From Pelomyxa schiedti (Eukaryota > Protista > Evosea), in the NCBI GenBank assembly GCA_020536535.1, contig JAHLWZ010000627.1, positions 1 through 51,658 of the forward strand: DNA of 51,658 nt. The letters are read 5' to 3'. Below the pieces are notes generated by a model. The model was not told the origin of the DNA. It did not search any database and saw only the letters and a list, made by a program, of their open reading frames with translations. The first letter of the stretch is position 1, and each line of letters starts with the position of its first letter. This document shows positions 47,207 to 50,675 of the stretch, piece after piece. The translations under genes and the position numbers were made by a program.

Positions 47207-47855
47207 CTACAGGTTCACATTTTCAGTTGAAACCTTGAATGAAATGACTTCTTCATTGCCCATTGCTCGCAAGCATGTCACTGTAATATTGTGTCCGTCT
47301 GAAAAGGCGGCAGAGAGGGAAGCACCAAGTTCACCATCAGGTAACAACATCTCCTTAATTGCCCCAACATCATTCAGCAGGGAGATTGTCTTGCCTTCAA
47401 CATTGATAACGTCATAGTCAACAGAGCTCACGTAAGGTACCATCCTGCAGTACAACATCACTATTTTTGCAAATTAATTAGAACAAACTAAAAGTAAGCA
47501 GTCAGTGGGCAATGCCAGAACAATAAAAAAAAAAAAAAAGGAAATACCATGTTGTAGACGGAACGGCACACTTCCTCAAGTTGCCTTCCTGTGAAAATAT
47601 CACGCCCCAGAAATCGCACTTGTGTGCTTCCGGCCCGGTTATACTTAGATGTGTCGGTGTCTAGTATCTTGCACGGCGCGCCTTGGAGTACAACATAGCC
47701 ACCCTTGCGTAGAGAAGAGCACGGCACTCGGTAAACGATGGTGTTCTTTTTATTTTCCCAGTGGTTAACAACCGAGGGGCATCAAACGGTTTCGTTTTGA
47801 GATTCCAGGCGCGTACCTCGCCCTCGTCACGTTCATGCTCCTGCGAAGTCGACAT
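47207..47855 (-). CDS. Divergent eIF5A paralog lacking the hypusine Lys; possible pseudogene (1-nt frame anomaly)
   Basis: CSSLRKGGYVVLQGAPCKI..TSKYNRAGSTQV.F.GRDIFTGR..EEVCRSVYNM and the C-terminal OB-fold (VTCLRAMGNEEVISFK) align with eIF5A. See findings for the anomalies. Confidence 0.85.
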
Positions 47856-47891
47856 CGCAAGCGATTGCAGGAGTTTGTGTCGGTTTTGGTG

Positions 47892-49314
47892 ATGGAAACT
47901 GACCCGCTGAAGAAAGAAGTTGGGTGCAGCTTCCCCTACTTTTTTGTTCATCAATTTCCACATTCAACTCGAACAGTTGAAGCTGCACCAATTGCTGCAG
48001 TTCCAAGAGAAGAAAAAGGTAAAACAAAACAACGGTGACCAGAATGCACAGTATAATAATTCAAACAGAATGGTCGAGACAGCAAAGCTGAAGTTCACAA
48101 CACTAAATGTTTTTGACGAACAGAGAGAAGCACAACTGAATGTAATCGCCAGTGCCTCGGAGGTTGGTGGGAATTTGGTTTTTGGCTTGGAGTTGGTAAC
48201 TTTTGCCCTAGTCCATGAATGATGTGGAAGGGTTTCCTAGGCTTTGGTCAACCGCAAACTTCACTCTGAACCTGCCGTCACCAGATTTCAGTATGAAAAT
48301 AATCTAATACCCGTTTTCCCATAGTGTAATGATAAATCTCAGTTCCTCAGTTTGTGAATTACTATGAGGATATTCAAGAAAGCCTTCCCTGGCCTCTTAA
48401 GTATGATTCCTGGGAGGGCCTGTCATTTCTTCCCACAAGATTTTTCCTTGTCCCAACTTCAGGTAGACAACTCCCAAGCTTTCCTTCGGCCTAATATAAT
48501 TTCAGGTGACGGTAATTGCCTATGCAATGCAATGAGCTTGAGTCTATGGAGAGCCAATGACAGTAATAAGATGCTCAGGAACACTCTGGGAAATGCCTTG
48601 GCTAAAAACAATGAAGCGGTCCATGAAAGATTCATGCATAACACAAAGCTACCGTATGTTAGGGACTTGCCTTGCAATTATACTTAATAGAGGTCTCAGT
48701 TGGGGAATTGCCGAGGAAGAGTGGCAACTTGACCTGAATTCCATCTTGGTTGACCCTGGATTCTATCTTAGTGACACACACATCTTCATGCTGGCAAACT
48801 TTCTTCATAGGTTTGTTGGCTTCCGTAATAACTGGTTCCTTATATTATCACTCCCACAGACCAATTGTCGTTTTCGGTGGCAAAGGTTCTACCCCTGTGA
48901 TATCTGGAATATACCTACCATTACTGTGTCCTCCAGAGTCATGTTTTCCAGTTCCAATACCCATGGTTTACTTCCATGCACACTTCATCACTGTAGGGTT
49001 CCTTCAGTATGCTATCAGGGTATGTTCCCACACAATCACAGCTCAAGTCAACCACTTCCACACAGAGCTTTTATGCCCTACCACTGTGTTCAGCCAATAA
49101 GCAGCCACTCAAGTTACATTTCTTGACAGCAGAGGAGGAAAGGAAGCTACAAGAGATTGGACAGAAGGCATTCCTGGGAAGGTGGATGTGCCTTATAGAA
49201 GAGGGTACAGTTTCATTTGCTGTGATGTCACCTCCATCACTACCTCTACCTGCACTGCAACAGGCCAATACTCGGTACCAACAACTGCAGGAAGAAATAA
49301 GAAGAAATCTGTAA
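47892..49314 (+). CDS. A20/OTUD7/TRABID-type OTU deubiquitinase
   Basis: Spliced LVPTSGDGNCLCNAMSLSLW (catalytic Cys), HIFMLANFLHRPIVVF, GIYLPLLCPPESCFPVPIPMVYFHAHF (catalytic His) and LPL...PLKLHFL. Confidence 0.92.

Positions 49315-49429: not shown

Positions 49430-50675
<1,246 letters not shown>

Follow-up and report, generated by a model that had tools for sequence, protein, structure and literature searches.

A predicted non-hypusinatable eIF5A paralog with an arginine-tipped loop and a break in its reading frame in Pelomyxa schiedti

The genome of the amoebozoan Pelomyxa schiedti contains an eIF5A-like gene in which an arginine occupies the place of the hypusine lysine, within a loop that is almost entirely rewritten, and in which the second and third exons are out of frame as assembled. 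The gene, referred to below as C627, lies on the minus strand of the window, that is, the whole stretch of 51,658 nucleotides that was analyzed (contig JAHLWZ010000627.1). We read it as a non-hypusinatable paralog that has become a freshly broken or truncated relic, an interpretation that we regard as evenly poised between being right and being wrong. More broadly, C627 is likely to be either a relic or a copy put to another use, and not a novel type of translation factor.

The gene consists of three exons (Table 1), none of which contains an internal stop codon. Its start and stop codons are intact, as are the donor and acceptor of intron 1 and, in intron 2, the conserved donor. Exon 1 is similar to its counterparts in C496 (MSTFQESQSGE...) and C937 (MSTCSEG...), both paralogs, and the predicted protein terminates in ...STENVNL. 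The Pfam search revealed an IF5A-like_N domain (PF21485) in exon 2 (2.7e-19, 69.2 bits, cut-off 27.1) and an eIF-5a OB fold (PF01287) in exon 3 (3.2e-14, 53.3 bits, cut-off 24.2). Since both matches exceed the curated cut-offs, they are not due to chance, and they substantiate the earlier claim that the loop is embedded in an eIF5A-type domain followed by an OB-fold. A match to EFP_N (6.7e-07) was secondary and less significant than the one to IF5A-like_N. The third domain of EF-P-type proteins was absent in the Pfam search, and the C-terminal part corresponds to the eukaryotic eIF-5a OB. The domain composition and the loop length are as in canonical eIF5A (C496, C1166 and Entamoeba), and in the canonical P. 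schiedti copies the gene is interrupted by introns at the two positions found in C627. The searches, the fold model of the N-domain and the tree of the C-domain were all run on single exons or on the public protein model.

Table 1. Features of the Arg-loop gene in the window and eIF5A-like copies in the P. schiedti genome
Feature	Contig	Position	Strand	Description
Arg-loop eIF5A-like gene	C627	47855-47207	minus	Three exons; loop SKYNRAGSTQ; Arg
Exon 1	C627	47817-47855	minus	ATG and 12 codons (MSTSQEHERDEGE; by translation), then GT donor at 47816-47815
Intron 1	C627	47746-47816	minus	71 nt, canonical GT...AG, keeps exons 1 and 2 in frame (by direct reading)
Exon 2	C627	47548-47745	minus	66 codons, eIF5A N-terminal SH3-like/KOW domain
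Rewritten hypusine loop	C627	47617-47655	minus	DTSKYNRAGSTQV, within exon 2
Arg codon	C627	47635-47637	minus	CGG, hypusine-lysine column
Intron 2	C627	47445-47547	minus	103 nt, GT...AG, T-run inside; position common to C1166, C496 and C937
Frame problem	C627	47440-47444	minus	Exon 3 opens GATGG-TA, versus GAT-GTC in C496; one extra G
Exon 3, homologous frame	C627	47210-47443	minus	78 codons, eIF5A OB-fold; stop codon at 47209-47207
eIF5A copy	C1166			Loop KTGKHGHAK; canonical
eIF5A copy	C496			Loop KTGKHGHAK; canonical
eIF5A-like copy	C937			Loop SKSGKHGHTN; divergent, Lys present
eIF5A-like copy	C178	30703-31903	plus	Loop SKTGKHGHAKM; within a 360-aa open frame
eIF5A-like copy	C4	288350-289200	minus	Loop SKQGKQGRAK; divergent, Lys present
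eIF5A-like copy	C796	24012-25012	plus	Loop KRPGKHGHVK; local GC 60%
eIF5A-like copy	C1163	10250-11200	minus	No recognizable loop; Lys lost

The preliminary description of this DNA, made from the sequence alone, had reported the rewritten loop and its CGG arginine codon, and every detail proved correct. A HMMER search of 1.84 billion representative proteins with exon 2 returned 742 matches, and in the 156 eIF5A domains aligned from the best 150 of these, lysine occupies the hypusine column in 148. The canonical TGKHGHAK reads YNRAGSTQ in C627, which leaves the loop length unchanged and retains only the central glycine, seven of the eight residues being altered. Across the 156 domains, 38 positions of the N-domain are near-invariant (at least 85% conserved). 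C627 keeps 23 of these and has lost 15, of which 7 fall within the eight-residue loop, whereas the canonical P. schiedti copies keep 35 and 37 (3 and 1 lost). Six basic or histidine residues of the N-domain are replaced (K21Q, K37R, H38A, H40S, K42Q, and K55Q).

Deoxyhypusine synthase (DHS) modifies the lysine at the hypusine position of eIF5A, and eIF5A with arginine at this site is unmodified and does not support the growth of yeast. Given this established requirement of DHS, the K-to-R change indicates that C627 is not hypusinatable and cannot serve as a DHS substrate. C627 has likewise lost the residues that serve canonical eIF5A close to the peptidyl-transferase center. The preliminary description had envisaged a decoy of canonical eIF5A; for a decoy of DHS, we infer from the rewriting of the DHS-contacting loop that this role is to be rejected. 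It had also envisaged that the arginine might itself be modified, for example glycosylated as by EarP, and so replace hypusine. We consider this extremely unlikely. A positional analogy with Arg-type EF-P is all that would speak for it, whereas the loop context is unlike that of rhamnosylated EF-P, and the EarP family (PF10093) had no match in the P. schiedti genome, in a search that lacked a positive control as the control genomes gave no match either. We know of no eukaryotic precedent for a glycosylated arginine in place of hypusine.

An AlphaFold2 model of exon 2 alone reached a pLDDT of 87.5. Foldseek matched this model best to eIF5A chains (TMq 0.75-0.82), and HEX-1 chains scored lower (TMq ~0.6). 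The N-domain is accordingly predicted to retain the eIF5A fold, by a model that is biased toward this fold because it was built on an alignment of canonical eIF5As. In filamentous ascomycetes, the Woronin-body protein HEX-1 (PDB 1KHI and others) is derived from eIF5A, has lost hypusination and has left translation. C627 resembles it in combining the eIF5A fold with the loss of the hypusine lysine. However, HEX-1 is fungal and C627 amoebozoan, the sequence of C627 is much nearer to canonical eIF5A, and the C-terminal PTS1 of HEX-1 (SRL-type) is absent from C627.

A second comparison is offered by bacteria, in which the homolog EfpL has an arginine at the loop tip that is unmodified and required (PMC11611912). 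Both EfpL/YeiP and EarP-type EF-P are like C627 in that a superfamily paralog with an Arg tip exists alongside a Lys-type factor, a likeness of positional homology only. The loop of EfpL is two residues longer and contains a conserved proline, whereas the length of the C627 loop is unchanged, and bacterial EF-P has three domains, in contrast to the eukaryotic two-domain form of C627.

As to the origin of the gene, DNA similarity to C627 elsewhere in the genome was detected in C496 only (73% in exon 3 and 67% in exon 2). The proteins are identical at 34 of 66 residues encoded by exon 2 (52%) and at 43 of 72 encoded by exon 3 (60%). Both introns of C627 are at the positions of introns in C1166, C496, and C937. 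In the OB-domain tree, the six P. schiedti copies included group together with the long-branch row P0035, with weak support (SH-aLRT 81), and the row nearest to C627 is C496. The similarity to C496 at the DNA and protein levels, the alike exons 1, the common introns and the OB-domain tree indicate that C627 is a lineage-specific, intron-retaining duplicate from the C496 lineage. The duplicate is apparently old, since the synonymous divergence (dS) from C496 is about 1.2.

Three other origins were considered and rejected. A processed pseudogene is at odds with the two ancestral introns, which are still present. A contaminant is at odds with the intron positions and the GC content, which are as in the other Pelomyxa copies, and with the position among them in the C-domain tree. 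The preliminary description had raised the possibility of an assembly artefact of a canonical gene, which did not hold, as 37% of the exon 2 bases differ from C496 and the canonical copies are found elsewhere.

A six-frame domain search of the whole P. schiedti assembly (52.4 Mb, 5,337 contigs) retrieved seven N-domain and six OB-domain matches. With C627 counted, the family comprises at least six divergent eIF5A-like genes besides the two canonical ones, and among the copies listed in Table 1 the lysine is missing in C627 and C1163 only. The genome contains one DHS gene, on C579, so that both the canonical KTGKHG-type eIF5A and the modifying enzyme, which the preliminary description had proposed to look for, are present in addition to C627. 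Deoxyhypusine hydroxylase (DOHH) is an oxygen-dependent enzyme, and it was not found in the anaerobe P. schiedti when the HEAT_2 family was used as a crude proxy. The one strong HEAT_2 match genome-wide, a 489-aa open reading frame (ORF) at C427:21900-25082, was taken, by eye only, to be TAF2-like and not DOHH.

A feature of C627 that the preliminary description had not mentioned is the junction of its second and third exons, which the conserved GT...AG intron does not join in the homologous frame because of one extra base. Exon 3 opens with GATGGTACCT, whereas its counterpart in C496 opens with GATGTCCCT. The signals of intron 2 are present, with the donor AACATG/GTATTT at 47547 and the acceptor CTGCAG/ at 47445. 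Owing to the extra G, the conserved GT...AG intron yields the N-domain followed by only eight out-of-frame codons (DGTLRELC) and a stop. As assembled, C627 therefore encodes no two-domain protein via normal splicing, in contrast to canonical eIF5A.

Three routes would restore the frame. The first is a GT...GG intron (equivalently GG...AG), which would give N-M-M-V-P; the second pairs a poor GT donor at 47564-47563 (GCC/GTTCCG) with an AG at 47462-47461; and in the third, the extra G was introduced in error by assembly or amplification. The P. schiedti genome was obtained from MDA-amplified single cells and assembled with SPAdes from Illumina and Nanopore data. GT-AG accounts for 98.4% and GC-AG for 1.6% of the 148,348 introns annotated in it, and a single one is GT-GG (PMC8887013).

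Were the frame break an error of the assembly or of whole-genome amplification, C627 would be an intact Arg-loop paralog (D-V-P) spliced by GT-AG. The amplification of single cells by MDA and the co-assembly with Nanopore reads are compatible with such an error, as is the location of the extra base in a GG dinucleotide of an otherwise intact gene. However, the SPAdes bases derive from Illumina reads, in which one-base indels in a 2-mer are rare, and a DNA search of the whole assembly revealed no second copy of the locus and no further contig with a different version. We consider an error at this site improbable.

A further reading is provided by the public annotation, which was generated with Augustus, PASA, and EVM (PMC8887013). 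The sole database protein that is near-identical to the C627 gene is KAH3760204.1 (P0018; hypothetical protein Pelo_7989, 138 aa), and a word search with this protein, which does not demonstrate absence, retrieved the C627 gene itself only. The Pelo_7989 model uses the start in exon 1 of C627 but introduces an additional GT-AG intron of ~70 nt within exon 2, by which the loop and two barrel strands are lost, and it includes part of intron 2 and a stretch from another frame as coding sequence. If the model were correct, the gene would encode a loop-less eIF5A-like protein. The model makes use of GT-AG sites only, results in a single ORF, and its extra intron has a typical length. Nevertheless, this is very improbable, as the excised stretch is homologous in frame, with 11 of 26 residues identical to C496 (GxDIFTGR included), and as two strands of the barrel are removed while residues from an unrelated frame and an intron are added. 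Since the homology of the excised stretch to eIF5A remains obvious, Pelo_7989 looks like the rescue of the one-base frameshift by an ab initio predictor. The practical consequence is that the public protein is best regarded as an artefact around the frame break.

Since pairwise dS is saturated for most pairs of paralogs, branch-specific changes were counted with three taxa, namely, C627, C496, and, as the third taxon, C1166. Over both exons, changes specific to C627 affected 28%, 23%, and 50% of the comparable codon positions 1, 2, and 3, respectively (p = 4e-4 against equal rates at positions 1+2 and 3), whereas the changes specific to C496 amounted to 5%, 2%, and 43%. The two exons of C627 differed in this respect, with rates by codon position of 0.20, 0.16, and 0.58 in exon 3 and of 0.35, 0.30, and 0.44, which is near neutral, in exon 2. 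In exon 2, the branch omega of C627, estimated with a parsimony ancestor, was ~0.62, and in exon 3 it was ~0.48. Owing to saturation at third positions, these values are upper limits; they are about ten times higher than in canonical eIF5A (0.06-0.07 for C496). Under neutrality, the chance of a stop-free exon is ~0.12 per exon and 0.015 for both. Constraint on C627 is relaxed yet non-zero; it rests mostly on the OB exon, and for exon 3 it is clear. C627 is not an old pseudogene, since its exons are free of stops, exon 3 is constrained and the other gene signals are intact.

No Arg-type ortholog of C627 was found in the HMMER search of the 1.84 billion representative proteins, which is weak evidence given the very thin sampling of pelomyxids. 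The best matches other than C627 itself were canonical in type and at most 54% identical to exon 2. Of the 742 matches, the best 150 contained an arginine in the hypusine column, apart from the row of the query, in one repeat of P0005, a tandem mite protein in which the loop is heavily gapped, and in two uncharacterized predictions, from Aspergillus parasiticus (KJK67857.1) and the mite Panonychus citri (XP_053205824.1). The latter two retain most of the loop (e.g., SKAGRHGQAKV), unlike C627. Such sporadic predictions of eIF5A-like proteins with a tip other than lysine (R, in others Q or E) resemble C627 in being lineage-specific extra copies; those with an Arg tip come from unrelated lineages, and none has been characterized. 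A word search with exon 2 among proteins of 36-115 aa gave no candidates, which does not demonstrate absence, an exact look-up of the exon 3 ORF, in a collection from which records of the P. schiedti genome may be missing, gave no match, a Protein Atlas search with exon 3 returned generic eIF5A clusters only, and a literature search found no paper on an Arg-type eIF5A paralog. Three tandem eIF5A-like units were observed in two predicted proteins, P0001 of Mugilogobius chulae (417 aa) and P0005 of Halotydeus destructor (403 aa); in the latter, the hypusine loop is lost in all three units.

The frame break, the loss of 15 of the 38 near-invariant N-domain positions, the near-neutral evolution of exon 2 and the lack of any ortholog found all count for the interpretation of C627 as a relic. 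So do the need of the public model to excise the loop in order to keep an ORF, the origin of the assembled bases from Illumina reads and the predominance of GT-AG introns in this genome. Several results count against it, namely, stop-free exons at a dS of about 1.2, a constrained exon 3, intact gene signals and the three conceivable routes to a restored frame. Moreover, the sole lesion is located at the splice acceptor; a random first lesion would fall there with a chance of ~5%, whereas compensation by a shifted or unusual splice would predict this location. Among the four options that the preliminary description had listed (a hypusine-independent factor, an Arg-modified one, a regulator or decoy, and a decaying copy), it is thus the decaying copy that gains most, in the form of a true paralog, whereas Arg modification is left unsupported.

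The location of the lesion, together with the open and homologous exons, the purifying selection on exon 3 and the predicted retention of the eIF5A fold by the N-domain, is also what favors a working, full-length, hypusine-independent eIF5A-like protein, produced via a GT...GG intron or the weak GT-AG pair, or else by normal splicing if the extra G is unreal. By analogy, such a protein may act at the E-site with an unmodified Arg tip, like EfpL, or may have a role outside translation, like HEX-1. The single GT-GG intron reported in the P. schiedti genome (PMC8887013), the functional, unmodified Arg tip of EfpL in bacteria (PMC11611912) and the radiation of the family in P. schiedti, in which other loops have been remodeled too, are in agreement with this possibility. 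On the other hand, GT-GG is represented by only 1 of 148,348 annotated introns, which, together with the almost neutral evolution of the N-domain, argues against compensation by splicing. The alternative donor is poor, four basic or histidine residues are gone from the loop, which lacks the extension of EfpL, and no ortholog was found. We therefore view a working protein as possible but doubtful. The more specific version, in which an unusual GT...GG intron allows P. schiedti to express an Arg-tipped eIF5A-like factor independent of both hypusine and polyamine, appears unlikely. If true, this factor would be a eukaryotic counterpart of EfpL within an eight-gene family of repeatedly remodeled hypusine loops, and this in an anaerobe.

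The relic interpretation, which we prefer, would imply the following history. C627, a lineage-specific duplicate of a canonical eIF5A of the C496 lineage, kept the two-domain fold but lost the DHS-modified lysine, together with almost every basic and histidine residue in the loop that extends to the peptidyl-transferase center. Long ago, it would have ceased to be a hypusinated factor, a role left to the two canonical copies and the one DHS, and for a time it may have persisted in a non-canonical capacity, under selection that was weaker and acted mainly on the OB domain. It would now be freshly disabled or shrunk to an N-domain stub.

To our knowledge, eukaryotic eIF5A is generally taken to depend on an invariant, indispensable hypusine lysine, no other protein contains hypusine, and the only uses of the fold without the modification so far are bacterial EfpL and fungal HEX-1. 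A hypusine-free eIF5A paralog under selection, if true, would show that the fold works, or is re-used, without the modification. C627, out of frame as assembled and known from a single species, does not yet carry that weight. The sturdier point is the family itself, with two canonical and at least six divergent copies, two of which are without the lysine.

Several of these copies have features of their own. The gene on C1163 has two exons, and its N-domain (...TNATRTGGARASR...) has neither a recognizable hypusine loop nor the lysine; its OB exon is nearest to the C4 copy (SH-aLRT 99), a divergent gene that has the lysine in a remodeled loop. On C178, the eIF5A N-domain, with an intact KTGKHGHAK, follows a Ser-rich linker and a ...FVSRYTSLVAVE... 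stretch, which suggests a fusion to a larger protein. The copy on C796 is apparently a single-exon ORF with the loop STKRPGKHGHVKV, and the GC content around it is higher than around the other copies (~45%).

In the window, the frame of exon 1 of C627 remains open for 36 codons further upstream (47856-47963, minus strand), beginning with another ATG (MWKLMNKK...); this stretch may correspond to 5' UTR or extend the N-terminus. An N run, which marks an assembly gap, breaks a long (GT/CA)n microsatellite at ~49990-50370. Two neighboring exons have no evident tie to eIF5A. A phosphatase-like exon at 49433-49639 (minus strand) has a weak PTP-SAK match (3.4e-4, 21.1 bits) that is under the curated cut-off of 27, and an exon of an OTU-type cysteine protease (PF02338, 6.7e-05) is located at 48364-48687 on the plus strand, divergent from the eIF5A-like gene and ~500 bp from its start.
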